A DNA stretch of 64,000 nt from Podarcis cretensis (taxonomy: Eukaryota): assembly GCA_951804945.1 (NCBI GenBank), contig OX638149.1, positions 58,528,001 to 58,592,000 on the forward strand, in the 5' to 3' direction. The notes below the pieces were generated by a model. That model was not told the origin of the DNA. It was given only the letters and a program-made list of their open reading frames with translations, and ran no database searches. Numbering within the stretch: the stretch's first letter is position 1; each line of letters starts with the position of its first letter. Position numbers and translations under genes: made by a program. Shown here piece after piece: positions 12,001-62,967 of the stretch.

Positions 12001-12372
<372 letters not shown>

Positions 12373-16904: not shown

Positions 16905-17130
16905 CACTGGTACCTCTGGTGACGAACTTAATTCGTTCTGGAGGTCCGTTCTTAACCTGAAACTGTTCTTAACCTGAGGTACCATTTTAGCTAATGGGAC
17001 CTCCTGCTGCCACCACACCGCCGCTGCATGATTTCTGTTCTCATCCTGAGGTAAAGTTCTGAACCCGAGGTACTACTTCTGGGATAGCAGAGTCTGTAAC
17101 CTGAGGTGTTTGTAACCCGAGGTACCACTG
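16905..17130 (-). mobile_element. Tigger/pogo-like MITE, copy 2
   Basis: TA|CACTGGTACCTC...GAGGTACCACTG|TA. Confidence 0.85.
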
Positions 17131-19251: not shown

Positions 19252-19493
19252 CAGTGGTACCTTGGGTTGCATACGCTTCAGGTTACATACGCTTCAGGTT
19301 ACAGACTCTGCTAACCCAGAAATAGTGCTTCAGGTTAAGAACTTTGCTTCAGGTTGAGAACAGAAATCGTGCTCCGGCGGCGCAGCAGCATCAGGAGACC
19401 CCATTAGCTAAAGTGGTGCTTCAGGTTAAGAACAGTTTCAGGTTAAGAACGGACCTCCAGAACAAATTAAGTACTTAACCTGAGGTACCACTG
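19252..19493 (+). mobile_element. Tigger/pogo-like MITE, copy 3
   Basis: TA|CAGTGGTACCT...GAGGTACCACTG|TA. Confidence 0.85.
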
Positions 19494-20461: not shown

Positions 20462-20624
20462 ATTCAAACGGTAACCAAGAAAGTGCTTGTCCCTCAAGAG
20501 ATCGATGAACCAGCCAATGCAACAGACTCCATCTTTGACATGTTGAATGAAACAGAAGTGACGCCTGAACCTCAGCTAATCATTAAGAAAGGCCTCGAAT
20601 TTAAGGATGGCATGAATGTCTTAG
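20462..20624 (+). CDS. SLC1A2: SLC1A2 exon 5 ([10 protein letters not shown]...DGMNVLG), extracellular loop with NAT and NET sequons
   Basis: ttcag acceptor, GTATGG donor, 163 bp (two codons shorter than the human exon as recalled). Confidence 0.96.
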
Positions 20625-21529
20625 GTATGGAAACACTTTTAGTGTATGTGTGCTTCACAGTTATTCTTGTAGCAATATTGTGCATTGTTTTGAATATATT
20701 GCTATCTTGTCATAACCCACCCTGGGACATTAAGGTAAGAACGCTAACTAAATGATTAAATGTTTTATTTCATTCATATTATATATGCTGTAAAATGCCT
20801 TCAGACTTTTAAATTTAAAATATATGTAAAGCAATATTCAAGTCCAATAAATCATATCACATATCCTTTACATATACTCACATTTACATATTCATTTTTG
20901 CGTATCCTCCTCTGTTTATCTGTATGGTGGCAGGAGAATCCAAATCTGTTCAGGAAAATAGAACTGCCAATCATTGAGCATTTACACACATATACAGATG
21001 AATGGTTATCCATCTACAAGCGGCATATGTTTATATCATTTGGTCATCGTGGCAATCTTTTATATTATGATAGATTTGTTAGGAGATAAAATAAGAACAG
21101 TGCATGCTTGAGTTTTCCTAGGAACACTGTTCTTCCTAGCATGGGGCAGGACTGATGGGACTTATGGGCCAAAACACCTGAAGAGCACCAAGTCATCATA
21201 TAACAGGTTACAGCAAGATATTAATAGCAGTGGGTTGTATCACATGCATCACTTGTGCAAGGGAAATTTGCCATTATCTTTTCCCCACTCTGTTCCTTGT
21301 GCCCCCCCCCCAAAGCTTCTCCTGAGAGTAGAGGAACACTTAGGGCCCTTCCAGACCAGTGTTTTACTGGGGGTGTATTCTGCAACATGTTCATGACACA
21401 AAAATAGTCTGAGCTGACTTGAAGCCTGATTTAGCAAGGTTTATTTATTTATTTATATTTTGATTAATTAATTAATAGGATTGCAGGAGTGTGGGTGCTT
21501 CGTTTTGACAGAGCCTCAGTAGCGTTTAA

Positions 21530-21679
<150 letters not shown>

Positions 21680-23816
21680 TGAGTCAAAGTCATCATCTGC
21701 CAAGACACACTAAATCCAGTTGTATTCTGGACATCATTTTGTAGCTTTTCTGTAATTTCTGCATGACCTACCTCACTATATTGGTCTGAAGCTACAGCAA
21801 TTATTTCAATTGTTTGCTTTTCACAGTTGTATCCTGCCCTTAGCCCACAAAGCTCAGAATGGCATAAACAAGAGTCCCCCCCCCCCAACAGCTAGGCAGC
21901 CAGAACAGAATGTGTGAGGTTGGACCAAACTCAACCTGGGGAGTTAATGGGATGCTTGAGCTGAGGTCTCATCAGTTCAAGTTCAGAAGTGCCACACCAC
22001 ACCACATTTGGTCAGAGAATCAAATGAGGCTGTTGCTATGTTTTTGCATATTTAATTTACTGCAGATGCTCAGGGCTTTCTTCTATCAGAACACATGGGA
22101 TTGGCCCCAGAAGAACTTCATCTTCACACAGCCACTGTCCCTGCATCACTGCTGGGACCGATTCCTAATATGATGCATCAACAGAAGGCTTACCTTCAAC
22201 CCATGACTCTTGTTCATTTGCATAGAAGAGAACATTTAGTCTATGGAGACACATTCCTTTATTTCATATCCAAAGGGACATTCTTTCCTATTATTTATGG
22301 CTACTCTCTTAGGAAAAGATCCACCCCCTCCAGCAGCTTTGGTGATTTATGAAACTCTTGTGCACACCATAATGACATAAAACAAAATTGGGCATCTGCT
22401 AAGGATGTTTCATAACCCTTATTTAAGGATTATCCTCAGTGACCATTTCAGGAAGCAGACTGCCTGGCACCTGAGAAAACTGTGCAAAATGGGGATTGTG
22501 TGAAGCTCATAGAAGCTTCTGATTGATTTGCTGCTTCTGGGCAATGCTTGGATGGTTCATGAGAAGGTCAGATGGAGAGCAGACATTCCTTTTTTTAAAA
22601 AGCCCAGTTCCAGTTTTGCTTCCTAAATCTATCTCTCTATTAAAAAGTAAGTTTCAGTAAGTTAATATAGAGCATAAGAGTGGAGATTGCTTTAAGCCAC
22701 CTGCTGCTCAGCAAAATTAATCACCATCAACAATAAATAAAGCTCTCTGACACAGTAACCCTGGTTGGTGGGTAGGCACCAGAAATTGCTTGGGAGCCTG
22801 GATATAGCCCACAGGACATGGGGTAGCCACTCCTGCTTCAAGGCCATTGTTGAAACCTTCACCTCTATTCCTGTCTGCATGGAATCCCAGCTGGAAGCTT
22901 CTCAGTAGCTTGAGTCCTGGGTATGGGCAGGGCCAGTGAGTCTCTTTGTGGGAGGTCTGGCAAGCACCCATTCATTAAGTGGTGTCATTATGAACTGCTG
23001 GAGGGGATGGATCATAGGAAAGAAAACAATCAAACAAAAGGCTTGCTTCTACGATATTATCAGCATGTATTAGGTTTCTCAGCAAGCAAGCTTTCGGCTG
23101 GTCTGCAAAACATTTTAATGTCTGGGCACAAGCCGTGTACTGGCACAAGCAATGAAAAGCTCAGCTGAGTCAGTTAACCATCCTAACTGTCTGGCAAAAG
23201 CCACCACTAGACTTTTAGGAACTGTAAGGGAATGGCTTTCTCTGGTCCAAGAAATTATCAGGGCTCTAATAATTCAGTACTGCTTCTGTTGTAGCCACTC
23301 TCACAGTGCTTATCTATTAGGCGTGGATAATTTTTTCTTCTTCTATCAAGAGCCCTTGACACACAGAATAAATCAAGTACTGCTACCAGCACCCCCTGCA
23401 CACAAAGGGGAAAATGCATCAGTCCTGTCTCAAAAGGGCTTTAAAATTTGGCAGTTTGTGCTGACGGAAAGCCAGCCTATTTGCACTTTCACCTCTGAAG
23501 GCACAGATCAGTTTTCAAACGTGCCAATCCTCAGGCAGAAGAGCTCTGAAGATGCTCCGGTGGCTGATAGCCACCCCCATCTGCTTCTTAAAAGGTAAAA
23601 GTGGATCTGGTCCCCTATCAGTCAGCCACTTTCAAAGCTGTCCTCAAGATTGTGGACTGAATCCAGCCAACAGGATAGTGTCAGTTTCTGCAGCATAGGG
23701 CCATGCAGCCCCTGGTCCCATCATTCAATAGTGGGGGTGTTTGGGGCTGAAAGGTTTTCCATCAAAAGGTGGTAATTTCAAGCTGCATGGTATAGCTTTA
23801 TCAACTGCCTTTATGA

Positions 23817-24128
<312 letters not shown>

Positions 24129-25673
24129 TGAAATGCAGAGTTAGCAACACGTTCAGGGCCATTATAAATACTTTGCTAACAAGACTTACTCAGCTGAATG
24201 TGTGAACACTTATTGTGTGGATTAGCAATACCTGTGAGCTGATCAATTAACCTAAAAATGAAGAAAAGGTGTAAACTGGATTTCATGTGCCCACAAACTC
24301 AAACCTGGTTCATAGCATTAACTGCTGTGATTCCAGCTACTTGGTTCAGGTGACATCTGTTCCCTCAGGGATTGCCTGCAGGAACTGGGGGCTGGGTGAA
24401 AGTCTTCTCCAGGGCTGTCCTAGACCATAAAATACTGCATTGGAAGTATCATTTTCAGGGCTTTTTCCCCAGTCCTGAACTGAGTTCTGGAACCCCTCAG
24501 GTGGTGCCATTGCCACTCTAAGAGAACGAGGGAGGTATTCATGGTGAGTTCTGGCACCTCTTTTTCTAGAAAAATAGCACTGGTCATTTTACTATATAAC
24601 ATCTAAATGCCTTGTTAGTCCATTCACAACTTGGATGGACAATTCGTATGATGAGGGATTCATCTCATATACGATTACAAAGGTGAATGGAGATCATTCA
24701 TGACAGAAATCCTTCCATAAGCCCAGCACCCCAGGCCTAGATCACCTGCCCTAAATCCAGTCCTAGACTTGTCTTTAGCACCAATAACTGCTGGGGCTTT
24801 TCTAGTTTTCCTCTTTAGAAGTCTGAGATCTCTCTCCAATCAGGCAAGGCTTTCCACTTTGACTTTTAGTCATGATCTTCTCTGCTTTTCCAACAGAACC
24901 TTCTCAGGTTTCAGACATATGCCCCCACTCCCCACTATAGCTAACAGGAAGCTGTCATCTCCCTCTCTTCCCAAGGCACTTCTGCCAACTGACCTTTTCT
25001 TCGCTGAGTTCTTTAGTCCCTATGACAACCAGGAGTAGTTATGTTATTAGAAATCATATCAGAGTTTTTTAAAATATTGTACAATATCATGCATTGGGGG
25101 AGGGATTTTCTTCTGAACATGGGGGAGTGAGGTTTAATTTTTTCTTCCCCAGCTGCATTCCCAACAAAAAATTGTCCTGCAACTAAAGATTGTCATTCCC
25201 AACAAAAAATCGTCCTGCAACTTAAAAACTAAAGACCTTATTGGAGCCAAAGTGAGATTTTACTTTGTGGCTCATTGCCATATGCGAGGGGTATGGTTTT
25301 TGTTGGAATTGTAACTAAGGAGGTAAGGGTTCCTGTGCTTCAGATGAAATATTCCATCATGCCTGCTATCAATTTTGGGTTGTTTAAATAAATTATCTGC
25401 CTTGGTTTCTAATGGCACATGTTGTCACATCTGGTTTTACCCTCATTCAACAACTGTCAAAATATATACATCTTCAGGGGCATGCACAAGCTTTGATCAA
25501 AACACTGTGCATAAGCAGTTTTACAACCATAGAATTTACATGCTTACATCAGTTCCAGGACGGAAGAGGCAGACGTTGAACTGTGGACAGACAGAGACCT
25601 GATGAATGTGTGTGTAAGATGCCTGGTTGCTCGCCCAGAGTGTCAATAGAGCTATCTGTCCCTGGAAGTCTGA

Positions 25674-25943
<270 letters not shown>

Positions 25944-26513
25944 TGAACATTACAGACCTTGCCTATTGCAAAGCAGTTTAAAGTTGTGAGCCTCCATTGT
26001 AATAAACAGTGAAAAGCCTTGGCTGCTTTTGCCAGTTCCCAAGTAGAGCATCACGTATTGCAGCCTACATGGGAATTACACAGTTTTCTACATGAAGTAA
26101 TTTCTGTGTAGGGATTTGTAAGACATGAAAGCAGACCTTGATTTCTGTCTATAACCTGGTTTCAGAGGCAGTGTTAATGTGTTGTGTAGAGATTTTCATT
26201 GTACTTGATTATAAATAATGGAAAATAAATATACTCAAGTTAGCATGAGTTAAATGAATCACATATTGCTTTAATCAAAAATCATTATGGAAAACAAATG
26301 ATTATTATTATTATTATTATTTTGCAAAATCAAAAGACTGGTGTGTTAATAAAACTAAACTCAGTCAAAATCTTCTAAATTATGATATTAGAGGCTGCAC
26401 TGAAATAACAGGGAATGTGTTCCTACAGAACTTGGAGTGATCAAGCAGTTCCCATATTTGTAAGAGAAACACTAACTAAAAGAAGGCCCAGCTAAACAAG
26501 TGGATGTGTTTAA

Positions 26514-26657
<144 letters not shown>

Positions 26658-46362: not shown

Positions 46363-46570
46363 TTACACGCCACTCTTCAAGGCCACTTCTTGTTGGTTCT
46401 GTGTTTCATCAATTGCCTGGAATTCATCTGTTTGGTTTTCTGGCTTCTCATCATGCACCAAATGAACCATTTCCCGAGATCTACTGGCTTCTCCATTCAA
46501 ACCACCCTTGTTTTTCTCATTTATGCCTCCTTTGCCATTGTTGATAATAAGTTTTTGCTTCTGCCCACAT
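46363..46570 (-). CDS. CD44: CD44 last coding exon, cytoplasmic tail (CGQKQKLIIN...GEASRSREMVHLV...LKSGV*)
   Basis: ttag acceptor, phase 2; aligns with the human tail CGQKKKLVIN...GEASKSQEMVHLV...MKIGV. Confidence 0.95.
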
Positions 46571-47887
46571 CTAATGGAAAGGGAAAAACATGGGATGTCA
46601 AAGCATACAATCACATTAAAAAGTGAAGTAAAACTCACTGATTCTATCTGGGTTAATCAAAGCTTTAAAACATAAGAAAAGTCCAGCATCCTGTCCTCAC
46701 TTTGGCCAACAAGATGCCCATGGGAAACCTGCAAGTATGCATGTAGTATTTTATCTCACGATATTCAAAGAAAAACTATGTTTTCAGTTAGGATGCCATT
46801 TTGATTTATAGCTTCCAGACTGAACCATTTTAAAGGAAATGTTATCTGCATTTGATCATGGTTGGTCTGTGCTTGTCTGCTTCTTTCAAGACAAAGGAAG
46901 AAAACAGCAGCTATGAAAGGTCAGAGACTATCATTAATTAGTAAATGTTTATGTCCACACTTAGATCCATGCATCAACTTACAAACTAGCAGGAAATACT
47001 TCTGAAAAGTACCTTCTGTGTGGTAGATAAGATAAAAACAACAACAATGAAGTAACATGACTTTGATAGGACTGGAATGCAGATTGCAGCCAAGGTAGTA
47101 ATTCTCAGTCCACAGTCAGTGGAGAGCTGTCCGCTCATGACTTAAAATGGGTTAACAGTATAGGATCATCTACAGTTACAGGCAGGTGGGTGCTTTGCTG
47201 CGTGGCAAAGAAGCCCACGAAAGTTACAAGCCTGCAATTTTTACTATCGTGCTGAGAGCTGGAAGGAGGATGACAAGGAGCTCCATCTCTCCTCTAACCT
47301 ACTGCATTTCTATACAGGGCTTCCTTGCTTTGGCAGCCTACTTGGTTTCTATGCTGGTTGCATAGGACGAAAGGAGAGCTCCATCCCTCCTGTGCCTGCC
47401 TGCTCTCACAGTGGCCACCTAGATGCCTATGGGATGCCCACATGCAGGACTGAGCATCCTTTAGGAAAATACTTGTATAGTGCAATTTCATGTCAAAGGG
47501 AAAAAAACACATTAAAAATACATAGTTGACAACCTCTCTCTCCCTCTCATCTATCTATCTATCCATCCACACACCCACTATAAAAACAAGAAAAAATTAA
47601 ACTTACTGATTACCAGCTAACTATTACAGTTGCAAGGTTAAAAGATATTCAGAAGCATAAAGAAGTTCCTTCATTGCTTACTTATTTAAATATTTACCAG
47701 CCACACTTTTGTATAAATGCACTATTGTGTGCCTTGACGTGTGCTTTTCAATGGACATCTCTTGAAAGAAGGAGCTGCTTTCTCCTTTGTATTATTTAAA
47801 GATGTCAGATCTTGGAATTTCCCAGCAACAAGACTAAAAGAAAGTTCTGGCACTAACCAGTGGAAATTTACAAAAGCCATTCCTTAC

Positions 47888-47966
47888 CTCCTTCGACTGT
47901 TCACAGCAATGCAAACACCAAGTATCAATGCCAGTGCCAAGAGAGAAGCAACTACAATAAGCCAAT
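47888..47966 (-). CDS. CD44: CD44 transmembrane exon ([27 protein letters not shown])
   Basis: acag acceptor, GTAAGG donor, 79 bp; near-identical to the CD44 TM segment. Confidence 0.97.
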
Positions 47967-49075: not shown

Positions 49076-49175
49076 ACCTAGAGGCTCACCACTTCCAGTG
49101 GTGGCAGTGAGAGGAGCAATCACAAACCACTAGGACTTTATAATAAACATAAATGGTAAAAGTAAAGACACCAAC

Positions 49176-49274
49176 CTGGTATGATAGCCATTCGTGGCTC
49201 GCTTTTTGGCGATTCCCCTGTCTGGTCAATGTGTGTCCCTCTTCCGGACCCCTTCGGGTCATTTGGGTTATCAC
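49176..49274 (-). CDS. CD44: CD44 membrane-proximal stem exon (DNPNDPKGSG...EPRMAIIP)
   Basis: Strong T-rich acceptor, GTTGGT donor, 99 bp, phase 1-1; ends in RxxxIP like the CD44 pre-TM exon. Confidence 0.88.
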
Positions 49275-50176
49275 CTAGATAAAAAACAAACAAACATGCA
49301 TTGCTCACAAAACATTAGAGCTGTGTTATATAAATCTGGAGCCCTTGAGTTTTCACAGACAAAAAAAATACATGATATTGTCAAAGGAAACACAGGTGCG
49401 TTGAGTTTCATAGCAAGGCCCTATTCCTTGACACGGGAATGGTAAAGTACAAGGATACAGCAGTGCTTAAGCTCCATATAAACCATAGTTTCCTCAGAGC
49501 TTTCATTTGGGTTTCTCCCTATCACACCTTGTTTGCCAACCATTTCAAAAAGCCTTCTTTTGTAAAATACTGGCAGGCTATGCTAAGGAAAGGGAAAAGG
49601 GGGATCCATTACTCTATGAAAATTAAAATCAGTTTTCCAAACCATGATAAAATGCTTTCTTCTTTTAAATTTCCAGCTAGTTTATATTTATTGTATTCTT
49701 TAGCCCTGTATTTTGAGTTCTTCTGTGAAGTGTATCCCTGTAGCAATCAGGGTGAAACTGTCTTTCCATAACACCACATACACTTATCAAATGCATGCAA
49801 ACACCGCATACATTAGCTAATATTGCTATGTGTAATTGTTTGTAGTGATACTTATAGAAATATGTATTAATCTGTTACTAATTTGAAAATAGTTCCCATA
49901 AGTGAGAAAAGAGAGAAAAATCAACTAATCTCCAAAACTGAAGAGACAGAAAGATTGTTGAGAAACGATCACACACCTTCCTTCGACTAGTGCAAACGCA
50001 TTCATTAAAATCAGAGTTTGATCATGCATCTTTGCAAGAAGCCATGAAATAAACAGAATGTAATCACAGTAGGATTTCCATCTAATAGCTATTTGTTTCC
50101 ACACCACATTTCCCCAGGATTTTGATGTATGGAAAAGTAAAGGTTAGCTGAAGTTCCTGGAAATTATAACTCTTAC

Positions 50177-50362
50177 TGGCAGTAGGCGATGATGGATGTC
50201 TGTCAGAACCACTGTCAATTTCAGGAAAAACTCCAGGTAATACATAATCTTGAGTGCCATTTACAACAGGCTCATCTTCAGTGCTCCATTCAGGATGCAA
50301 TCCATGTAACTGTGGATCTTGTGTTGATTCTTCAGTTTTGGTTCCATCCTTTGAGACTACTG
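50177..50362 (-). CDS. CD44: CD44 repeat stem exon R10 (VVSKDGTKTEESTQDPQLHGLHPEWSTEDE...SPTA)
   Basis: ccatcattacaacag acceptor, GTAAGA donor, 186 bp, open, phase 1-1. Confidence 0.85.
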
Positions 50363-51840
50363 CTGTTGTAATGATGGTTGAATTAACTATTAACTATCAA
50401 TTAACCTTGAAATTTGCAGAATTAAAACCTGTTTGTTTGTTTTTTGTTTTACAAAATTCCTACTATACTGAAAGTTTAAAAAGAACAAAATAGGGAAGGT
50501 TGCAATGTTTCTGATCTGCTCATGAAACCTTCCAGTAGTAATGGACAGAGACTCAAGTGATCAACAGCCAGAAGCAGCTCCGATCAAAGTAACATTGGAT
50601 CCAAGGACCATTTGGCAAAAGATGCCACATTAGAGTGTGCATACACATGGAAATATTGTCTAATAATAAAATTCATGCATGGCTCCTGCTAACAAGCCCA
50701 TTAACCCGCACCACGCTTGGGAAGTAAGGTGTTGTCATTTCCTTCCCTTTTTCAAAACTTAAACAAACCCACTGGCTCAAATTCAGTCCGATTTTTATCT
50801 CTACAGAGATAAATATTCAAGAAATGTAAAACACACCAGCAGTTTGGAAAGCCCAAGAATATGCCAGGAACAACAAAGTGAAATGAATAATCAATATATC
50901 AGTTCTTACTACAGATATTAAGAGATGCTCTAATTGTCTACCTAAAAAGAAACACTAGCCACTGAAACTAGGAAGGAAACGAGTCTCTAAAGTACACAAA
51001 AAACTTCAACACACTGCCATGTTTAAGCAAGGATCCTGCAAAACCTTACATCTTGGCATTAATACTGACATAAAGACAGTATTTAAAGACATCACTAGGC
51101 TCTCAAGTAGGAGATGTAACAGCAGACAGCATAATAGATACATTTTGTGAAGGATCATTAGCTTCACATGATAGCAAAATGACATAATTGAAACAATAAA
51201 TGCAAATATTTGCAGAACGGAATAGAGAAATCATGACCTAAATTGTTTTAGAAAATTATTCCCCTGTACATATCATACTCTCCCGCCCCCCCCCGCCCCC
51301 GCAAAAAAAATAACATATGTTTGGGAAACAGTCAATTTGATCACAACTCAAAATGCAATACTCCTTCAACAAATTTACGTTGTGTAAACCTGCAGTGCCT
51401 GGCAAACAGACAAGTACTACTCACAATCTTGGTGGCTATCAAAATGGTCATGGCTATCACAATCACATGTGCTCCCTTAGCCACAATTAAAGAATATTAA
51501 GCAAGGAATTTTGACAGGGAAATTTCAAAACTGAAGTTCAAAGATATGGAAATGTCATTAGACTGCAACTGCTTACAAATGATTTTATGACATTATTTTA
51601 TGAGGTGATCTCCACATGGTACAGTCCCCAAGTAGCAACTTCAACACATTCATTTTACCAATAAGGTCCTGGCCAAGGTAACAATTTAGTTTCTGTTCCT
51701 CGACCTTATATAAGTTCAGGTTACATGCAATTTAATTTTCGGTGTCTGTTTTAAAATAGACATGAAAATTAACAACATGAGATTATCTCACCTAAGATAG
51801 ACAGGGTTAAAAGGAATCCCACCACCATTCTACTGAATAC

Positions 51841-51987
51841 CTGTATGATCAGTATTATTTTTTTGACTTATTCCTCTTCGAGGAACAATTCCAGGAACTA
51901 AGACATCTGCTGTTGATTTCGTCGTGTATTTGTCTTCATGACCCCATTGCCTCACTGGTTCTGGGGTTGAATCTTCTTTGGCCACAT
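51841..51987 (-). CDS. CD44: CD44 repeat stem exon R9 (VAKEDSTPEPVRQWGHEDKYTT...VPGIVP...DHT)
   Basis: ccattgccatag acceptor, GTATTC donor, 147 bp, open, phase 1-1. Not in the ORF track. Confidence 0.8.
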
Positions 51988-53136
51988 CTATGGCAATGGT
52001 AAATGAATTGAGATTGTAAAAATAGCAAAACTATTAGCTGCTTTTCACTCTGATCCACTGACTTCTTACTCTACCAGCAGAATATTTCTATCCGAACAAT
52101 ATGCTGGGATGCCAGATTTGCTACAATTCAGAAATTCCAAAAGACTGACAGTGATCTGGCTTCCCCCTTGGTTTTATTTTCTGACCCAACATCTGACATC
52201 ACCAGCTGACACTGACAGTTGATTAGGCATGCAGAAAATTTCATCAACTTGACAATGACATTTGTGTTATATACTTTTGATGGAAGAGAAAATTATTCAT
52301 GAGCTACAGCCAAGTACTTGTCAGTTGTGGATGAGAGCCCACGTTCTTCAACCTGCTCTCTACTCACCACTCCCTTTCTCACACACTCATTTCAACTCTT
52401 CTACAGGTTTTAACTTGGGCTAATTTTATTATAAATCATGTCATAATTAAATGATCATCACAGCAAACATCATTAATTGACTCTGGGTGATTGGCATATG
52501 CAAATAATAATCATAATGAATGAGATATAAAGAATTAAAATGTAAGACTTAGTTTCAGAACCATATTTGTATATCTTGTTTGTTTATGTTCTACAAGCTC
52601 TACACATGATCAGACATTTAAACCAAAGGACATTATGCCCTACAGACTAGCTTGAGAACAAAACAAAACATCAGCATAGAAATATCTGGTCAGGTACTAT
52701 CAAGTTCTTGTGTCATGGAATGAATGCTATTGTCTATATTGCCAGGCCTGTTTTTTCTGGAGCCTGCTATATAAACTTGATGGGAGGAACATCTCCTTTA
52801 AATGGGGTTTGCATAAAATCAACTCTTAGAACAGGAGTTGTTCCTTATTATTATTAAGGAATACAAAAGTTAAAATCAGAGGATTTCCTAGAGCATGAGA
52901 CATCGATCCCAAAGAATCAGTCCCTCTCAAATTGCCCGAAAACAGAAACCTTATGTTAAAAGGAACAAATAATATTCTTAGGTTAGAATTCCAACCTTAA
53001 AATCTAGACATTAATCAACATTTCCATTTGGTGGAAAGGCGGGGTACAGATTTAAAGAACGACAAATTCTTTGTTTCAAAAGCAGTGCTTCATTTCATAC
53101 ATTGTGATGAAATGAATAGATTATTCAGCGCAATAC

Positions 53137-53289
53137 CTGTTTGTTTGCTTTCACTATCTGAATCAACTCCCATCGGTATACCATCTCTAGAAGTATTTGT
53201 GGGATATATTTCTTCAGCATCCCAGCCTGGCTGATGAATGGGAGGTAATGGTTGTTGAGTTGAGTCTTCATGATCGTTGTGTATGACAG
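53137..53289 (-). CDS. CD44: CD44 repeat stem exon R8 (VIHNDHEDSTQQP...PGWDAEEIYPTNTS...KQT)
   Basis: caccaaacag acceptor, GTATTG donor, 153 bp. Confidence 0.8.
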
Positions 53290-53549
53290 CTGTTTGGTGA
53301 ATCAATGATGAACTTAGGTTTGGACATGTTAAAATACAAAATGATGGCTTTTGCAAGCCACTCCCCTCCCAATAACTCACTGTGCAATATTCTCAGCTTT
53401 ACTCATATTTACATGCAATTACATTTCTTGTGCACCTTACATGTTCAACTATATTTACTGACTGAAAATAAGAATCCAGTTGTGAGCAATGTGATTCCCC
53501 ACACCATCACCAGTCACCACATAATTAAGAATGGATCTGCCACAACTAC

Positions 53550-53729
53550 CTGTATGATAGAAATTATCTATGTTATTGTTTCCAGCTGGAGGAATAACTT
53601 CTATGGGTACTTCATCCTTAGTGCTGTTTGTAGAATAATCATCTTCTCTACCCGATTCATGATGTATATCATGTACCGTTGGATCACGAGTAGCAACTTC
53701 ATGTTTGATATCATCACTGGAACCCACAA
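53550..53729 (-). CDS. CD44: CD44 repeat stem exon R7 (VGSSDDIKHEVATRDP...NFYHT)
   Basis: ccatcattatcatag acceptor, GTAGTT donor, 180 bp. Confidence 0.78.
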
Positions 53730-53992
53730 CTATGATAATGATGGTTGGGTTGGGTTAATGTTAAGTGTTCTGTAACATTTGCAGAACTACATCCCACATG
53801 ATTTGCTTAGCATCGCATTTAATTTTTTAAAATTAGTATTGCTAATGGATATCCATTACCACATTTTAGTGGATCTCAATGCAAATTTAGTTTCCTTACA
53901 AACCAGGACACAAAAGGAATATAATTCATTTGGAATATATCAACAGAATGAAAAAACAAAAACAAAACAAAAATGCACACTTCCTCTTTATA

Positions 53993-54514
53993 GTTACATG
54001 AAATGTTTTCTTTTTATTCTAACTTTCTGATAGAGGAATACTACTAAGTAGCAAGTTATCTCTAGATATTTGCAGTGTATTTTATTGTTACTTAAAAGTT
54101 TTACTGTGTGCATGAATGAAAAATGGATGTTCAAGGCTTATACCATAACTATAGGTAAAGGTAAAGTTAGGTCTAGTTGTGGCCGACTCTGGGGTTGTGG
54201 CGCTCATCTCGCTTTATCGGCCGAGGGAGCCGGCGTACAGCTTCTGGGTCATGTGGCCAGCATGACTAAGCCACTTCTGGCGAACCAGAGCAGCGCACGG
54301 AAACGCCATTTACCTTCCCGCCAGAGTGGTACCAATTTATCTACTTGCACTTTGATGTGCTTTTGAACTGCTAGGTTGGCAGGAGCAGGGACCAAGCAAC
54401 GGGAGCTCACCCCATCGCGGGGATTCAAACTACCAACCTTCTGATCGGCAAGCCCTAGGCTCTGTGGTTTAACCCACAGCGCCACCCGCGTCCCACCTTA
54501 ACTATAGACCACTG
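53993..54514 (-). pseudogene. Decayed CD44 repeat exon disrupted by a Sauria SINE
   Basis: Family-type acceptor gcatcattggaatag|CAGTGGTC (AVVYS); after removing the SINE it reads YGISLEHP...NKYTAN...DNLLLSSIPLSES*NKKKTFH, with stops and frameshifts. Confidence 0.6.
54155..54498 (-). mobile_element. Sauria SINE with 9-bp TSD
   Basis: TAACTATAG at 54146-54154 and 54499-54507; reverse complement of the 9309 copy. Confidence 0.9.
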
Positions 54515-54648
54515 CTATTCCAATGATGCTGGAATCAAGTTTAAATATTATGATTGCATGGCCAGTTCTCATATCAATTACAGACCATTGTGCCCTATCA
54601 TGACACGAGCATCTTCCTTGTTTTGTTTAATGTCAATGAATTTCTATA

Positions 54649-54849
54649 CAGTGGTACTTCAGGTTGCAGACTCTGCTAACCTGGAAGTAGTACCTCGGGT
54701 TAAGAACTTTGCCCCAGGTTGAGAACAGAAATTGTGCAGAAGCAGTGCAGCAGGCTCCATTAGCTAAGGTGGTACCTCAGGTTAAGAAAGGTTTCAAGTT
54801 AAGAACAGACCTCCGGAACGAATTAAGTTCGTAACCCGAGGTACCACTG
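54649..54849 (+). mobile_element. Tigger/pogo-like MITE, copy 4
   Basis: TA|CAGTGGTACTTC...GAGGTACCACTG|TA. Confidence 0.85.
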
Positions 54850-54963
54850 TAATTGATTTCAGTAAGATTAAAATTGCAACCTGTTATCTAGCTCAATACA
54901 GCAGCCTAATTCATCTAGAACGTAACAAAGAGAATATCTGAATTTTCTTCTTCTTGCTTGTAC

Positions 54964-55128
54964 CTATATGTGAAGTTTCATTTCCATGCACGTATTCAAC
55001 TGAAGAAATAATTCCAGGTACAAAATAATCTGTTGACGTGTTTGAAGAATGCCTGTGTTCATTGTTCTGGCCAGGATGTGCTTCTTGAGTAGAATCTTCA
55101 TGGTCACTACCACCACCAGAGACCACAG
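54964..55128 (-). CDS. CD44: CD44 repeat stem exon R6 (VVSGGGSDHEDSTQEAHPG...VPGIISS...NETSHI)
   Basis: gtgacag acceptor, GTACAA donor, 165 bp. Confidence 0.8.
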   Translation of the reverse strand: MWSLVVVVTMKILLKKHILARTMNTGILQTRQQIILYLELFLQLNTCMEMKLHI

Positions 55129-55235
55129 CTGTCACAATATAGTTAGATCATTCATTCATTCATTTATTACAATGCTTATGTAATCTATTACAAAATTGTT
55201 TACTGAGAGGCACATTACCTGGCCTTCTACTGCAC

Positions 55236-55875
55236 ATAGATTCAAGTTACAAGAAAGGAGATTCCAGCTAAACATTAGGAAGAACCTTCTGACAATAGGA
55301 GTAGCCTAACAGTGGAACGGACTCCCTTAGTAGGTGAGGGACTCTCCTTCACTGGAGGTTTTTAAGCAATTATTTTATTTTTTAAAATAATATTTATTAA
55401 GTTTTTTAACAAACAGAAGAAAAAGCATAAACAATTAACAAAAATCACATAAAGAAAATCTAAATTCAATACAAAAAACAAGATTTAACATAAAAAGAAA
55501 AAAGAAAAAAGAAAAAATCCCTCTTTCTGATGTCTTCCAATCATTTACTTATTTTCCTGACTTCCTCACACCTCCCTTTTTTGTATTCCATTTAAAAATT
55601 TATTCAGCAAATTCATACCCTCTTAATTTAACCTTAATTATTATCTTCACATATTCAAATTTCAAATTTTCATCTTATATCAATCCCTTCATACATATTC
55701 TTATTTTTCCTTATTGCTAGAACTTCATTTCATTCCAACGTCATTAGCATTCAAGTTTTTAAGCAGAGATTAGATGGTCAACTGTTGTGGAAACTTTTGT
55801 TGAGATTCCTGCATTGCAGGGGCTTGGACCAGATGGCCTTTGGAGGTCCCCTCCAACTCTATAGTTCTATGGTTA
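55236..55875 (+). mobile_element. CR1 3' fragment split by a nested antisense L1-like insertion (55369-55754)
   Basis: CR1 ORF2-end and 3' UTR sequence on both sides; 11-bp TSD GTTTTTAAGCA at 55358-55368 and 55755-55765. Confidence 0.8.
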
Positions 55876-56490
55876 TGTATTGGGAGGCTTCTGACTCTTT
55901 CTAAATAATGCATATGTTAGCCCATCAGCATCCCTAAAGGGCATGTTGATGGCAGAATTTCCTTCAAAAGATTTCAATGAAACAGATTGGTTTAACAAAA
56001 AAAAATTGTATCTCTACAAGACTATTCATGTACAGTTTTGTTTTGTTTTTGTAACTTGGAGGCATAATGCCAAGTAGCCCTTCAGCCCTAGATTTATTTG
56101 TATTTTACCTGTCCTTACTACTCCACCACTAAATTACTCCATTCATAAGTCAGTGGTCACTGTCATCCCTGAAAGTCGTAGTTATGGCAATTTATTTCTG
56201 TACTTTCTGCATTTATACACCCACCTTCTAACAGTGACTCATAAAAAACACACACCTGGGTTTGAAGGCTAAGTATGGAGAGTCGTCTCCTGTAATTACT
56301 GACTCTGCTTTTAAGTGGGTTATGAATACCATTATTTTGTTGCAAATGAATGGAACTTTATTATCAACTGGCAGAGAGAATGAGAGTAGTTGGGATAGCT
56401 CTTCAAATGGAGTACGGTGACAATGCAGTACATTTGAAAAATAATACAAAGAACTGCAAATTTATTAAAGTTCTATTTCCTGGGAGGTAC

Positions 56491-56664
56491 CTGTATGATG
56501 CGTCTCCTTTTCATGCTTTCCTTCACTTGAAAGAATAATTATAGGTGGGATATTATCCATAGTTGTGTTTGTGGTATCTTCATCTTCACTTTCCCACCCA
56601 GGATGCATTGCATGTGGTTTTTGTGTGGTGTCTTCCTGCTTGCCATTATCACTGGAGGCAACAG
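56491..56664 (-). CDS. CD44: CD44 repeat stem exon R5 (VASSDNGKQEDTTQKPHAMHPGWESEDE...KETHHT)
   Basis: ccatcattacaacag acceptor, GTACCT donor, 174 bp. Confidence 0.82.
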
Positions 56665-56884
56665 CTGTTGTAATGATGGTTTGAATATTTTTCAAATGTT
56701 ACATAGGTATCGTTCTTTTCATCAGTTCTTACTAAGTGCTATGTTTTGTTGAATTGAATCAATATCGTATCAGGTTTTTAAGTATAATTACGTTTAGCCT
56801 GATGGCATTTACCTACTATGATTTACAGTTCAAGTACCTTTCATCCAACACCAGAAGAATTAAAAGCCATTAGAATTCCTGTAC

Positions 56885-57008
56885 TTGGAAGACACCCAAG
56901 GAGGTGTTTCCATTTCAAGACTGCTTCAACTTGGAAGAGTTATTTCAGGCAGAAGATAATCTCAAGCAGCAAACAAATTTTGCATACTTTTTCATCACAC
57001 CATGCTTC
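56885..57008 (-). pseudogene. Decayed CD44 repeat exon fragment
   Basis: Pieces read EAWCDEK and DYLLPEITLPS*SSLEMETP, paralleling EWSNEE and DYVLPGV/TLPEIIHPSENE; family-like donor GTACAG. Confidence 0.45.
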
Positions 57009-57144
57009 CTGTGTTTAGTGAAAGTCCATTTATTTAAATGGAGTCAGGATTAGATCTTTACATAGTTTGAGATAGCTTCTAATTTATCTAGAGAGATTAC
57101 TGAAAAAAGAAGTAAAATGTTTTTACTATTTTTCCAGTCAATAC

Positions 57145-57324
57145 CTGTGTCTGAACGTTCATTTTCATGCTCACTTTCAGCTGCATGAAGAATTCCAGGC
57201 AGCAAATGATTTCCAGATGTGTTTGTGAGATGTTTTTCTTCATTATCCTGTCCAGAATGCTCACTGTGCAACATTGTATCCCGACCGGAATCTTCATAGT
57301 CAGTGCTATCACTGGAGACTACTG
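57145..57324 (-). CDS. CD44: CD44 repeat stem exon R4 (VVSSDSTDYEDSGRD...LLPGIL...HENERSDT)
   Basis: ccatctttgtaacag acceptor, GTATTG donor, 180 bp. Confidence 0.8.
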
Positions 57325-57506
57325 CTGTTACAAAGATGGCTGGGTCAGTTTTGAATTCTCTGCTTTCACATGCGCTTCACTAAGTGCAATTCTACTTAAC
57401 CCTAACATGGAAAGTGGAAATCAGTAACCACAATAGCCGTTTTAGATGAGACAGAACTATAGCTCTATCCAAAACGTATTCTATGGCTATAAAATCTACA
57501 CAGAAA

Positions 57507-57840
57507 ACAGGGCCAGTATACCTGAACGAGCGTCTCCCCCCCCCCCCCATCATTCTGCCCGGACACTGAGGTCCAGCGCCGAGGGCCTTCTGGCAGTTCC
57601 CTCACTGCGAGAAGCAAAGTTACAGGGAACCAGGCAGAGGGCCTTCTCAGTAGTGGCATGCGCCCTGTGGAATGCCCTCCCACCAGATGTCAAAGAATAA
57701 ACAACTATCTGACGTTTAGAAGGCATCAGAAGGCAGCCCTGTTTAGGGACGTTTTTAATGACTGATGTTTTAATGTATTTTTAATCTTTTGTTGGAAGCT
57801 GCCCAGAGTGGCTGGGGAAACACAACCAGATGGGGGGTTA

Positions 57841-57882
<42 letters not shown>
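57507..57882 (+). mobile_element. L2-clade LINE 3' end with (ATT)n tail
   Basis: Peptide ARTLRSS...RAFSVVACALWNALP; ATT microsatellite at 57841-57882. Confidence 0.8.
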
Positions 57883-57928
57883 TCTAATTTAGCTAAAAGA
57901 TTTAATGATAATGAATCACTGCCTGTAC

Positions 57929-58086
57929 CTGTATGTGGCATTTCCTTTTTACTCGCTTTTTATTCTGAGGAATGATTCTAGGTGGCTAATTAAATTTAGA
58001 TGCATTTGCAAGGTATTTATTATCACTGTCCCAGACAAGATCATATACAACCATCTCTGCTTCATGAATCTTTTGAAGCCTCTTGT
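57929..58086 (-). pseudogene. Decayed or stop-containing CD44 repeat exon
   Basis: tttcccag acceptor, CATACAG|GTACAG donor; reads ...WDSDNKYLANASKFN*PPRIIP... then shifts frame to KEMPHT; 158 bp. Confidence 0.6.
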
Positions 58087-58261
58087 CTGGGAAAGCAAAT
58101 CTTTCTGCCATAGCACTCATTTTGCCGGACTCTGGAGTATTTATAAATACTTGTCCAGATCAAGTCAACATAGGCCTTTGGTCATCAACCTCAATGGAAG
58201 ACTAAAGTAACCCAGTCTAAAAAAGGAAAAGGCAAGAATAGGTGGGTTTTTTAAAAAAAAA

Positions 58262-58376
58262 CCTTTTCATGTTTTTTTTCTCTAGCTGCAATAAATTTGC
58301 CTTCACTGCCCAAGAGGATATAAACTAGCCTACATGTGTGAATCATGAGAGGAATCTTTGTAGTTCATTCCAACAG
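58262..58376 (-). pseudogene. Decayed CD44 repeat exon
   Basis: Family acceptor cattattatagcag|CTGTTG; reads VGMNYKDSSHDSHM*, later KHEK. Confidence 0.5.
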
Positions 58377-58929
58377 CTGCTATAATAATGTCTGAATCTG
58401 TTTTAAAGACAACAAATGGTAGCGAATGGTAGCCTGATAAAGAATAGACCCATTAAAATCAGTGGACTGGAATAACATGACTCCATTCATTTCAGTGGAT
58501 CAGCTCTTGATTTAGTTAGACAATACCCTATGTTAGCAGTTTCCTCCTCATAATTATTTGATGCCCATCTTATCTAGCTTTACGGGCACTATCAGAATTT
58601 TAGGTGAAGTCAATTAAAATATTAGGTTAAGGCTTAAGCAGTATTAATTATTAGGTTAAGACTGAACTCCATATGCATTGTCAAAGTAATAAATTCCATC
58701 TGGGGAAACAATAACCTCCAATCTAACATGCCACATTTCTCAAATTCTTTTCCCAAAGAAGTATGCATGGCTTCATCTTTAAGAGGACTTCAACCCAAGA
58801 AGACTTCAAAAACATTTCTGTTTTGCTTAGAAATTTACTGATGTGCTATGCAAGCTTGCTACTATTTTCTTGTGGATTTGGGGTTTTCTAAAAAAATTTT
58901 TTGTTGTTTTTTGTTGGTTTTTTTTGGGA

Positions 58930-59293
58930 GGGACGCGGGTGGCGCTGTGGGTAAAACCTCAGCGCCTAGGACTTGCCGATCGTATGGTCGGCGGTTCGAA
59001 TCCCCGCGGCGGGGTGAGCTCCCGTCGTTCGGTCCCAGCTCCTGCCCACCTAGCAGTTCGAAAGCACTCTTAAGTGCAAGTAGATAAATAGGGACCGCTT
59101 TATAGCGGGAAGGTAAACGGCGTTTCCGTGTGCTGCGCTGGTGCTGGCTCACCAGCTGCAGCTTCGTCACGCTGGCCACGTGACCCGGAAGTGTCTCCGG
59201 ACAGCGTTGGCCCCCGGCCTCTTAAGCGAGATGGGCGCGCAACCCCAGAGTCGGTCACGACTGGCCCGTACGGGCAGGGGTACCTTTACCTTT
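58930..59293 (+). mobile_element. Sauria SINE, CpG-rich young subfamily
   Basis: GGGACGCGGGTGGCGCTGTGGG head, intact B-box, ACCTTTACCTTT tail. Confidence 0.9.
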
Positions 59294-59458
59294 AAATTGT
59301 TTTTTAATTTATTGTTTGATCTTGAGTTTACATATTTGTCAGTCATCTTGTGGAAGTTTTGTCGTTGTTGTTTTGAAAGGTGACTATACATTTATTAAAT
59401 GAATTTTAAAAGTGTAGAAAAGTTTAACAATGCTGAATTTTCTTTTTCTTCCTAGTAC

Positions 59459-59642
59459 TTGAATGAGATATTTCCAAATCCTCTTCATGCTTGTTTACAC
59501 TTGAAATGAGACCAGGCATAATTCCATTTTTAGATGTTTTTGTAGGATATCAATTTTCATTGTTCCCACCAAGATGGATCTCATTAATCTATATACCATG
59601 ATTATCAGTCTTCGCGGTTAATCTTACCTGTGGAGACCACAA
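59459..59642 (-). pseudogene. Decayed CD44 repeat exon containing a possible 15-nt microexon (59628-59642)
   Basis: gtcatcattgtagcag acceptor; VVSTGKINRED* ... HLGGNNEN*YPTKTS...MPGLISS...HEE; internal consensus donor CAG|GTAAGA. Confidence 0.65.
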
Positions 59643-59841
59643 CTGCTACAATGATGACTGAATCAATACCACATTTTCACTATCAGGCCCATGTTATGTA
59701 GATTAAATAATTTTCTTAGGATGTATCAGTAGTTAAGGCTGCAATCCTGATTCATGCTGACTTCATAGGAGTCAGGATTACACCCTTCGTAGGAAATAAT
59801 AATTAATGATTGGGGCTGAATAGAACTTTTCTGAGATATAC

Positions 59842-60009
59842 CTGTATAAATGGATTCATTTTTTTGCTCATTTTCACTTGGATGAATAATTTCAGGTAGT
59901 GTCTCTTTGCTCGATGAGTTTGTAGGGTATCTTTCTTCATTGGACCATTCAGGATATATGCCATGAGATGGTGGGCCTTGAGTGGATTCTTCAACTTTCA
60001 TCCCATTAT
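59842..60009 (-). CDS. CD44: CD44 repeat stem exon R3 (NGMKVEESTQGPPSHGIYPEWSNEERYPTNSS...NESIYT)
   Basis: aagcag NAGNAG acceptor (alternative start 60012), GTATAT donor, 168 bp. Confidence 0.82.
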
Positions 60010-61372
60010 CTGCTTTTGTGGTGAAGTATTTGTTAATTTAATATATGCAGAACCACTGTCTATTGTACATGCATCTTGCAGTTCAATATGAATCCAACTA
60101 CACTGGTGGCACTCAAGGAAAAAGGGTGCCTTTTAGGGGTCTGTTTATCTGTCACTAAGTCAAGATTCTCTATTACCACTTTTTGTATAAGCACTTTTCA
60201 ATAAAAAAAAACCCAGTTCATATTTCAGTTAATTCATTTTAGTTAAATCCTTTGAAACAATATCTTATCGAGCCATTATTATGTACATGTGAAGCAAGCA
60301 TTTTGTATTTCACAGCTATAAAATGATTTTGGTTTGAAGACAACATATTTTGTTCATTTCTTATTTGCAGACAGCTAGGTTTCTAAAAAAAGAAAGAAAT
60401 AAGCTTGCACATGAGGTATTTTGACTTCCTCATAGACACATGCTGTTTATGGCACAACTACCAAGTATTTGTAAAAACAAATTTGTTCTTTCAATGTTGT
60501 GATGGTAAAGCAGGCAACAGAAATACAAATTAGTAAATACTGTAGATAATTTTAGTGATGTGGAGTATTTTCTACTTGAAGAAACGCTAAAACAACCATA
60601 ATGGGCTGCATCTACTCAACAGAGGCCCAAGCAAAATAACTGTGTGTAAAGCACTATGACACTAATATTCTTGGTGTCAGAGATTGAATTATATTGGGGT
60701 GGTGGTGTCAAGATGAAATAAAACTAATATGATATAAAGCCCTACTCAGATGATGAAATGTGACTTATCTGTTTGAATGGAATAGTGGCTCTTCTCAAAG
60801 CTACCTCTTTTTAAAACTTAGGTGCCTCTGAGGCAAAAGAACATAGGTCCACCATTCTTAACACTGACTGAGGTAGCAAGACAGAGAAATGTGCGTAGGA
60901 GCCTACAGAAGGGATGGCACCGTTTGGAGGCTGGGCCTCCATGGACTGGCGGTAATGCCATCCATTATTGGGAATGCTAACAATCCATTATTAATGGAAG
61001 GTTTTGTCAGACTGCCATGATTATCTTAGTGCCCTAATACTGGAATACTAGGAATTTACTTTAAAGGGTAGTAAGAAGGCCAAAATATATGTGAGATGCA
61101 GGTCTGTGAATGTAGCTGTCATGTAAGGGGCACGTGAACTGGATCGGAACCGTGACATAGGAGGGGCTGCTGCTTTCCTCCTGTGCAATTACCACAATAA
61201 AAATGGCTTCCGTTTTTGAAGCCATGTTTCACCCCAAATGGAGAAGCATCAGACTCCAGTTCTAATAAAGGCTGGACTTCTCGCTGAGACATAAAAGCCT
61301 TCCTATTCGCTGACATAAAAGAGAAATAGAACTGAACATAGGAAGATTACATTAACATCCTGCAGGCAGTAC

Positions 61373-61546
61373 CTGTCTGAGAAGATTCATTGTCATGAAC
61401 CTTCTCACTTTGAGGAATAAGTGTTTCTAGGACACCAAGGATCGTTCTGTTTGTGGCAGAATCACTTCTCCGCCCAGGTTTGCCCACTGCTGATAACTGA
61501 TCTTGATGTGATTCTTCATGTTCAGCACTTTCATTGAAGGCTAGAA
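61373..61546 (-). CDS. CD44: CD44 repeat stem exon R2 (LAFNESAEHEESHQD...HDNESSQT)
   Basis: atcattgctacaatag acceptor, GTACTG donor, 174 bp. Confidence 0.75.
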
Positions 61547-61823
61547 CTATTGTAGCAATGATAAATAATGCAGGAATCAGTAACTCAATATTTTGGATTT
61601 CCATGTGTTAGTGAGAGACTTAGAAAGTTCTGTGTGTGAACTCCAATGGAAGCAGGCTTCCCCAATTGTTTCACCAAAGGATGGAGACCTTATTTATGCA
61701 GTAGAATCACCACCTCAACAGAAGTTAATAGGGAAGCCCATTCTGCCTGTCAGAACTCTCACCTCAACAAGGAGTCACTGTACTGAGGTGGTTATTTGAA
61801 TCAGTATAGTTCAAACCTTCCAT

Positions 61824-62014
61824 GGGGAAGAAGCTTGACTCAGTGGCAGAGAATCTGCTTTGCATGCAGAAGGGTTCAGTCTCTAGGATCTCCACATAGG
61901 ACTGGGAAAGACTCTGTCTGAAACCTGGCAGAGCTGCTGCTAGTCAGTGTAGACTGTCCATCTTGAGCTAGATGGACCAGTGGCGTGACTCAGTATAAGG
62001 CAGCTTCCTATGTT
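61824..62014 (+). mobile_element. Squam3-type SINE
   Basis: CTCAGTGGCAGAG head...GAGCTGCTGC.AGTCAGTGTAGAC...GAGCTAGATGGACC...TATAAGGCAGCTTCCTATGTT. Confidence 0.75.
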
Positions 62015-62778
62015 TAAGATGGCATGCTAATCACTAGTTAGTGCAAGAAGAGGTATAATTTTATCATTTTATATAATTTTTCTTTCTGTGTGGACATGGA
62101 TAGAATGACTAATGCACAAACCAATTCGGCCAAAATGCTTGGATGAAAATTCAGTCTTCTTACAGAATCAGCTACTTCCACTGAGTTCAGTAGGCTTACA
62201 TCAGCTTAAACCCAGATTCTTCAATTTGCATACTGTAGCAATAAGTCTGGCAACCAATACAACTCAAGCTGCTGCATTGCCACAACAGGGATAACACACA
62301 GATAACTTCAGAATAACCAAACAGCAAAGTGGTCTTGATTTATACCTCTGTATTCTCACACACGGCACATCCTTAATATTCAGTCAAACCACTGGCCCAT
62401 CAAGCCCAGTACAGTCTACTTTTAGATATTTATATAGGTTTACTAGCAAATGGTATAAACATAAATTTTATCGGTATGACATATCTGGGGTACGTTTGAC
62501 ACTGATAATAGATTGTACCTATCTATTTAAAATGTAACTAAAAATAATGGGAGAAGAATGGCTGCGAAAAGCAAAACTCTCAACAGTTTGGAACTCACAT
62601 CTCCAACATATGGAAGAATAACTAAAGGAAACTCACAACGCCCCCCCCTCCCCCAGTGACTAAAAGTTCTATTTTTAAGTATGGTTAAACATCATTTCTC
62701 CAGAAACCCGGATCAGGAAATGAAAGCAAACAATCCAAATGAAAATCTAATTCTACAGTTCACTATTGGTTCTGATAC

Positions 62779-62967
62779 CTGTATGGTGGGAAGATTCTTC
62801 CTCCAGAGTTCTTTCTCTTTCACTTGATGAAACAAGCACAGGATGCAATACATCTGAATCTGTGGTTGTAGGTAATGTGTCTTCAGTTTCTAATCCAGAG
62901 AGAGCGCCATCTAGTGGATTCTGAGTTGAGTCTTCCTGCTTGAAGAAATCATCACTGGAGGACCCAG
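62779..62967 (-). CDS. CD44: CD44 repeat stem exon R1 (GSSSDDFFKQEDSTQNP...EEESSHHT)
   Basis: catcatcataacag acceptor, GTATCA donor, 189 bp. Confidence 0.82.

Follow-up and report, generated by a model that had tools for sequence, protein, structure and literature searches.

Does the variable stem of a lizard CD44 gene, in which copies of one exon follow each other in series, result from a recent burst of duplication in the lizard's own lineage, or is it an old part of the gene? CD44 variant isoforms have been intensively studied in mammals, in relation to cancer, inflammation and stem cells, but how the variable exons arose is obscure. The question is raised by a stretch of 64,000 nucleotides from Podarcis cretensis (assembly GCA_951804945.1, contig OX638149.1, positions 58,528,001 to 58,592,000 of the forward strand; hereafter the window, in whose own numbering coordinates are given), where ten homologous cassette exons lie in tandem on the minus strand. 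Taking the evidence as a whole, we consider it very probable that the variable region of a lacertid CD44 gene is represented in the window by its 3' half. A first-pass annotation of this DNA had proposed that the lizard's lineage built the array by serial duplication of one exon; this proposal is contradicted by the finding of orthologous groups of the exons across squamates, by the presence of the repeated unit throughout sauropsids and by the net loss of units in lacertids.

Ten Copies of One Exon in the CD44 Stem

The exons were placed on the minus strand by their boundary strings and handled singly or as an alignment, and public models supplied the joined protein. The array spans positions 50177-62967 and consists, in the order of transcription, of exons A (62779-62967, 189 nt), B (61373-61546, 174 nt), C (59842-60009, 168 nt), D (57145-57324, 180 nt), E (56491-56664, 174 nt), F (54964-55128, 165 nt), G (53550-53729, 180 nt), H (53137-53289, 153 nt), I (51841-51987, 147 nt) and J (50177-50362, 186 nt). 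All ten lengths (147-189 nt, 1716 nt in total) are multiples of three, and every exon is preceded by AG, followed by GT and open in phase 1-1; coordinates and sizes thus reproduce exactly those that had been read from the DNA in the first-pass annotation. The recomputed peptide consensus, xxSxDxxKxEDSTQxPxxHxxHPGWxxEDxxxTNTTxDxxxPGIIxxSExxxxNExxHT, likewise agrees with the single shared template described there. Exon E is the copy nearest to this consensus, and exon J, the last unit, has a distinct C-terminal end. Pairwise peptide identity among the ten exons is 15-44%, and blastn matches between exons within the 15-kb region reach E-values down to 4e-10, far beyond chance.

The likeness between copies at the DNA level covers the exon, about 15-20 nt of intron on the acceptor side (consensus ccatcattacaacag) and the gta donor. 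The earlier claim of homologous flanks is therefore correct for these short segments and does not extend to the remaining intron sequence, which is not alignable between copies. Neighbouring live exons are separated by introns of 0.26-1.6 kb, with the exception of the C-D intron, which measures 2.5 kb and contains two dead copies. Self-comparison of the 49-64 kb region with blastn returned only exon-sized matches and one unrelated inverted repeat, hence there is no sign of a recent duplication of multi-exon blocks in this species. Exons A-I end in G and exon J in A, and the exons start with CT, TT, AT or CA. Given the phase 1-1 arrangement, the codons formed at the junctions can only be those of Ala, Val, Asp or Ser, so that a stop codon is impossible and any subset of exons remains in frame.

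The gene that carries the array is CD44. Its transmembrane and tail exons encode a sequence identical to the C-terminal part of XP_053243970.1 (CD44 antigen isoform X13 of Podarcis raffonei), and the ten exons of the window are collinear, with 93-100% identity, in isoform X2 of P. raffonei (1173 aa) and isoform X4 of Podarcis muralis; these matches bear out the gene identity assigned in the first-pass annotation. The Zootoca X4 model contains nine of the ten. Downstream of exon J, all on the minus strand, lie a constant membrane-proximal stem exon (49176-49274, 99 nt, phase 1-1), which matches S(V)NPNDPKGSGRG...RMAIIP of P. raffonei and has the highest RNA depth, the transmembrane exon (47888-47966), the encoded peptide of which is identical to the RefSeq P. 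raffonei CD44, and the cytoplasmic tail exon up to the stop codon (46366-46584, 5' boundary approximate), where the open segment ends in ...CGQKQKLIINNGKGG...ALKSGV. The window therefore contains the CD44 hallmark of a single-pass transmembrane segment followed by a basic juxtamembrane motif and the CD44 cytoplasmic tail. The order A to J, constant exon and transmembrane exon is the same in the window and in the congener model. The upstream CD44 exons, including those for the Link domain, lie beyond the window; in the congener model that contains all ten exons, the Link domain is found as Pfam Xlink at residues 32-120 (E 1e-20).

Age and Orthology of the Array

A profile of the ten peptides, compared with 1.84 billion representative proteins at a cut-off of E <= 0.001, gave 45 matches, and every multi-unit match (at least 345 aa) was a sauropsid CD44, with up to 11 matched stretches per protein and E-values down to 5e-166. 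The matches came from lizards (Podarcis with 10 stretches, Salvator and Gekko), a snake (Vipera), turtles (Pangshura and Pelusios), a crocodilian (Alligator, 11 stretches) and birds (emu and ostrich with 10 stretches each, falcon, goose and ground tit); no mammalian or amphibian protein appeared at this cut-off in the set searched. In a homology search with the Podarcis model, the best 120 of 1215 matches were all from squamates and turtles and comprised over 100 clusters of CD44 isoforms from RefSeq and UniProt. The suspicion, raised in the first-pass annotation, that such repeats might already be held in automated reptile or bird gene models was thus well founded, as they are present in RefSeq and UniProt CD44 isoforms.

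The relationships among individual units were examined in a tree of 158 units from 15 species and the window, with branch support given by the Shimodaira-Hasegawa-like approximate likelihood ratio test (SH-aLRT). The tree resolved 13 single-copy squamate groups at collinear positions, with SH-aLRT values of 85-100 except for the group of exon C. Nine of the ten window exons fall into single-copy groups that span several squamate families and include geckos or snakes (SH-aLRT 88-100, with 0 for C). The group of exon A comprises 12 species (support 100) and that of exon C 11 species, while the values for exons B, D, F, G, H and I are 100, 94, 90, 88, 92 and 98, respectively. Between window exons and their counterparts in Rhineura, Anolis, python and geckos, identity ranges over 41-90%, the highest value being that of exon I and its Rhineura ortholog, as against 27-38% between paralogs. 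Three further groups complete the squamate set. The first, U0, is represented by one more live unit just upstream of the window, so that the array does continue past the window as had been surmised; the second, X1, is found in geckos, a cordylid and python and has left no trace in the window; the third, X2, is live in Rhineura, Varanus, Anolis, Pogona, Sceloporus and Hemicordylus and dead in the lacertid window.

Outside squamates, alligator, turtle, falcon and ostrich contribute their last units to the clade of J-type units (SH-aLRT 91), and the other non-squamate units cluster by lineage. From the squamate-wide single-copy groups, together with the sauropsid-wide occurrence of the unit, it follows that the array is older than crown Squamata and the unit older than crown Sauropsida. 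The differences between lineages are a matter of birth and death of copies. Duplication of exons in tandem had given rise to 13 or more distinct units by the time of the squamate crown group; these have since been kept one-to-one with occasional exon death, at least two having been lost in lacertids. In turtles, crocodilians and ratites, recent re-amplification of units is apparent.

The models of ostrich, emu and Chrysemys picta contain three to five identical repeats of a block that consists of one or two units. These blocks reflect either recent amplification of several exons or an artefact of assembly or gene modelling (collapse or expansion).

Dead Exon Copies in the Lacertid Array

Decayed copies were sought with a DNA profile of the live exons (nhmmer). 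The best preserved of them, psi1 (59454-59661, minus strand), matches over the full model with an E-value of 4.9e-19 and has stops in all three minus-strand frames. The second, psi2 (57922-58395, minus strand), is composed of a 5' part (58293-58395; E 4e-6) and a 3' part (57922-58067; E 9e-11); it also bears stops in all three minus-strand frames, and its blastx matches are weak only. A remnant of a further dead copy lies at 56047-56126 on the minus strand (nhmmer E 0.008; blastx 1e-7 to a unit of Hemicordylus), and the DNA profile points to weaker remnants near 56901-56969, 53997-54080 and 54494-54533. The best blastx matches of psi1 are units of the X2 orthogroup, and since these are live in other lizards, psi1 represents an exon that died in the lacertid lineage. 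The trend in lacertids has been loss and not gain, with at least two units lost. At its 5' end, psi1 contains a 15-nt segment of the form AG...GT (59628-59642) that was considered as a candidate micro-exon; the corresponding peptide, VVVST, occurs at no C-D junction of the lacertid isoforms examined.

These observations bear directly on the idea that recent serial duplication, specific to this lizard lineage, gave rise to interchangeable spacer units. The units are clearly paralogous, as this idea would have it, and the identical recent copies in ostrich, emu and Chrysemys show that the locus can amplify. However, for nine of the ten exons (E groups with Zootoca and Rhineura only) the nearest relatives are single units of other squamate families, geckos or snakes included, and not paralogs in the array, the introns between copies no longer align, and the net change in lacertids is a loss, Rhineura and Varanus still having a live version of the exon that died as psi1. 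We therefore regard a recent, lineage-specific origin as highly improbable and retain an array that is older than the squamate crown group.

Expression and Splicing of the Array

Three bulk stranded RNA-seq runs and one DNA-like run were aligned to positions 49160-55150 (5991 nt), which contain the constant exon and exons J to F; the organism from which the RNA was obtained is about 1% diverged from the window in these exons. The constant exon and exons F-J were covered to an RNA depth of 20-100, the introns to one of 0-3. In almost all of this coverage the first mate maps to the plus strand, which is what a dUTP-type library should yield for a minus-strand RNA. The joints listed all have CT..AC ends and lie exactly at the predicted boundaries: constant exon to J (49274/50177, 13-39 reads per run), constant exon to I with J skipped (49274/51841, 28-38), I to H (51987/53137, 51-72), H to G (53289/53550, 58-83) and G to F (53729/54964, 30-44). 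None of these joints was seen in the DNA-like run over the same stretch. Moreover, 140 and 185 reads in two of the runs leave the 3' end of the constant exon and pass into letters that spell the start of the transmembrane exon. Reads therefore join J or I to the constant exon and the constant exon to the transmembrane exon, which establishes the spliced link between array and membrane anchor on which the first-pass annotation had staked its reading.

Each of the three RNA runs contains joints that include exon J as well as joints that skip it. Transcripts include the neighbouring units F-G-H-I together, and J is optional. Among 15 lacertid models, the skipped exons form contiguous blocks (F-G, B-C, C-E, B-E, B-F, B-G, and J together with F-G); exon B is skipped in P. 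raffonei isoforms X14 and X19, and exon G is missing from the five Zootoca models examined. The 2^10 in-frame combinations envisaged earlier are arithmetically possible, given that no junction creates a stop, but what was seen is restricted to skipping of J in the reads and skipping of blocks in the models. A mutually exclusive array of the Dscam type is ruled out by the consecutive joints F-G, G-H and H-I and by models with up to 11 copies.

The acceptors of exons A-J are poor in pyrimidines and rich in A and C, with a pyrimidine content of 0.45-0.65 compared with 0.75-0.80 for the constant and transmembrane exons, and purine-rich GAAGA motifs in the exons are conserved at all codon positions. 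Such weak acceptors, along with the conserved GAAGA motifs, suggest that inclusion of the array may depend on exonic and intronic splicing enhancers. Enhancer-dependent inclusion is established for the variable exons of mammalian CD44.

Tandem acceptors of the NAGNAG type (aacagCAG) are present at exon D (57322-57327) and exon J (50360-50365). At the C-D junction, isoforms of the congeners either have or lack a single Ala (IYTAVVSS versus IYTVVSS), hence both AGs are apparently used.

Composition and Constraint of the Encoded Unit

Each live exon encodes one unit of 48-62 residues with the core EDSTQ.P...HPGW..ED..TN(T/S)S..PGII..SE..HT. The units contain 12.5% Ser, 11.2% Glu, 9.6% Thr, 8.5% Asp, 6.9% Pro and 6.8% His (by class, about 20% Asp and Glu, 22% Ser and Thr and 7% His). 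At least one N-x-S/T sequon is found in nine of the ten units, in eight of them within the TN(T/S)S core. AlphaFold2, run on the ten-row alignment, predicted no secondary structure (predicted local distance difference test score 63, predicted template modelling score 0.14). No Pfam family was assigned to the units, the full congener model yielding Xlink only, and a profile search of the PDB with the units returned nothing at E <= 10. By analogy with mammalian CD44v, the units would form a disordered, heavily glycosylated acidic stalk, and alternative splicing would set its length, its glycan load and possibly its docking sites.

The array evolves faster than the Link domain and the transmembrane/tail part, identity between Podarcis and Anolis being 57% in the array, 75% in the Link domain and 86% in the transmembrane segment and tail. 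Among paralogs, nucleotide identity at codon positions 1, 2 and 3 is 0.54, 0.59 and 0.50, and the ratio of nonsynonymous to synonymous substitution rates (dN/dS) is about 0.7-1. Seven of the eight fixed differences between the window and the RNA organism (positions 50267, 50296, 53620, 53661, 53729, 55048, 55082 and 55116) change an amino acid. The predominance of such changes suggests that the stalk may be under relaxed or diversifying evolution among close relatives.

Alternatively, the exons may be kept mainly as splicing or regulatory elements at the RNA level, their peptides being nearly neutral filler. The near equality of paralog identity at the three codon positions, the dN/dS of about 0.7-1, the predominance of nonsynonymous differences from the close relative and the faster evolution of the array than of the Link and transmembrane/tail parts would all fit such an explanation. 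On the other hand, the ten exons are still open, multiples of three and in frame, unit identity amounts to 41-90% across Squamata, dying copies gain stops quickly, and the N-glycosylation sequon is kept in most units. We therefore consider a mainly RNA-level role unlikely and continue to read the array as an old set of coding cassettes.

Several points weigh against this reading as we have set it out. The orthogroup of exon C is without branch support (node support 0), its members from Rhineura, Anolis and gecko being 58-78% identical to the window exon, and units of Zootoca and Rhineura are the only ones with which exon E forms a group (support 92). The RNA organism, being about 1% different from the window, is not demonstrably the same individual or species; the reads covered only exons F-J and the constant exon, so that expression of A-E rests on congener gene models; and a J-I joint is absent among the joints listed. 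Seven nonsynonymous differences out of eight, along with the dN/dS values, indicate weak constraint on the protein sequence, hence conservation may partly act on the RNA. Finally, that the units are glycosylated, disordered and serve as a stalk is what we infer by analogy.

Relation to Mammalian CD44 and Other Exon Arrays

The variable exons v1-v10 of mammalian CD44 belong to the same gene, lie at the same membrane-proximal stem position between constant exons and are frame-preserving cassettes; in both cases neighbouring exons are included in blocks, and the peptides are acidic, rich in Ser and Thr and presumably glycosylated. The lizard units differ in being longer (48-62 residues), more numerous and plain copies of one template; lacertids have 11 live long units, descended from an ancestral set of at least 13, in addition to shorter upstream exons. 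In the congener model, at residues ~340-395 and upstream of the array, there is an extremely acidic exon with an Asp/Gly run followed by GEGSG. This exon resembles the heparan-sulfate-bearing v3 of mammals. With a v3-like exon upstream, the array would correspond by position to v4-v10, and the counts of 11 live and at least 13 ancestral units leave a clean one-to-one match to v1-v10 unsupported.

One might nevertheless suppose that the ten exons are simply one-to-one orthologs of v1-v10 and that nothing was added in sauropsids. The equal count of ten, the position and phase symmetry, which are those of mammalian v-exons, and the acidic GEGSG exon upstream in the congener model all speak for it. 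This supposition is very improbable, however, as the v3-like exon confines the 11 live and at least 13 ancestral units to the position of v4-v10, as the units exceed the approximately 30-45 residues of most mammalian v-exons, and as no mammalian protein was found at E <= 0.001 among the 1.84 billion sequences.

A deeper relationship is less easily dismissed. When iterated, the unit profile weakly detects the shorter variable exons upstream of the array, namely P. raffonei residues 286-338 (E 5e-5) and several units of 30-40 residues in Chrysemys, ostrich and falcon; the detection of the upstream exons hints that the whole sauropsid variable region may derive from one unit. All amniote v-exons might then descend from this unit, with sauropsids keeping the long form and mammals retaining shortened, diverged copies in partial orthology. 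Mammalian v-exons share loose W..P and H.TT motifs and the 1-1 phase, which would agree with such a descent, whereas the profile search without a mammalian or amphibian match argues against it; we hold it to be possible, yet somewhat less than probable. More tentatively still, we speculate that the sauropsid array is the ancestral CD44 variable region, that all amniote v-exons come from one exon of ~55 residues, and that the 13 squamate units were kept one-to-one for ~200 million years because single exons have distinct partners and serve as more than spacers. Mammalian v3 and v6 have distinct partners. If the single-origin, ancestral-array reading were true, it would overturn the published view of variable exons as a mammalian trait.

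According to that view, the genomes of birds, reptiles and fish have no variable exons, and v3 is an exclusively mammalian trait (PMC2531186, 2008). The sauropsid data contradict the former statement as regards sauropsids, and the acidic GEGSG exon of the congener runs counter to the latter. A paper on the mammoth mentions a v1 deletion only, and we found in the literature no paper on the variable-exon array of reptile or bird CD44, its repeat architecture, its orthology or its turnover. The sequences themselves are not new, since the exons are contained in public automatic models of dozens of species and two congeners have all ten. RefSeq and Ensembl CD44 models of sauropsids (among them XP_053243970.1, P. 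muralis X4, Alligator X13 and Chrysemys picta up to X49) contain the unit, which is the same in all sauropsid orders, and these are automatic models only. The sauropsid variable region is larger and made of recognisable copies of one exon, which are expressed, alternatively spliced and conserved in position in squamates. It thereby offers a model in which the CD44 variable region originated from exons duplicated in tandem, copies being gained and lost thereafter, a natural series of stalk lengths with which the role of the stalk can be probed, and a clean system for the study of enhancer-dependent cassette splicing.

The array is not a new kind of system. Titin PEVK and arrays like it are tandemly duplicated, differentially spliced exons, which in titin form an intracellular spring, and they share with the CD44 array the path from tandem duplication to frame-symmetric exons encoding a disordered segment with splicing-tuned length; the sequences are unrelated, and an intracellular spring contrasts with the predicted glycosylated surface stalk of CD44. 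In CD45 (PTPRC), exons A, B and C are cassettes that add O-glycosylated, disordered extracellular segments to a leukocyte glycoprotein. The likeness to CD44 lies in the alternative cassettes that add extracellular segments to a surface glycoprotein, and the difference in that CD45 has three such exons, which are not obvious copies of one unit. Mucin-type proline/threonine/serine tandem repeats within one large exon were ruled out as a counterpart, as each CD44 unit is a separate exon with introns.

Neighbouring Gene and Other Features of the Window

A plus-strand gene of the SLC1A type, with exons at ~11131-26657 and Pfam SDF matches with E-values down to 3e-25, converges on the 3' end of CD44. 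At human 11p13, CD44 and SLC1A2 are likewise arranged tail to tail. The neighbour is consistent with SLC1A2 synteny, its exact membership within the SLC1A family being a candidate assignment drawn from sequence.

An interspersed repeat, probably a tRNA-derived short interspersed nuclear element, occupies 54160-54960 and 58927-59262; its loose-end consensus includes GGGATTCGAACCGC. This putative element shows very high RNA and DNA depth on two strands, and an inverted copy with 79% identity over 339 nt lies in another intron of the array. A trinucleotide microsatellite at ~57808-57941, in the intron that separates psi2 from exon D, gives a poly-Ile open reading frame on both strands.

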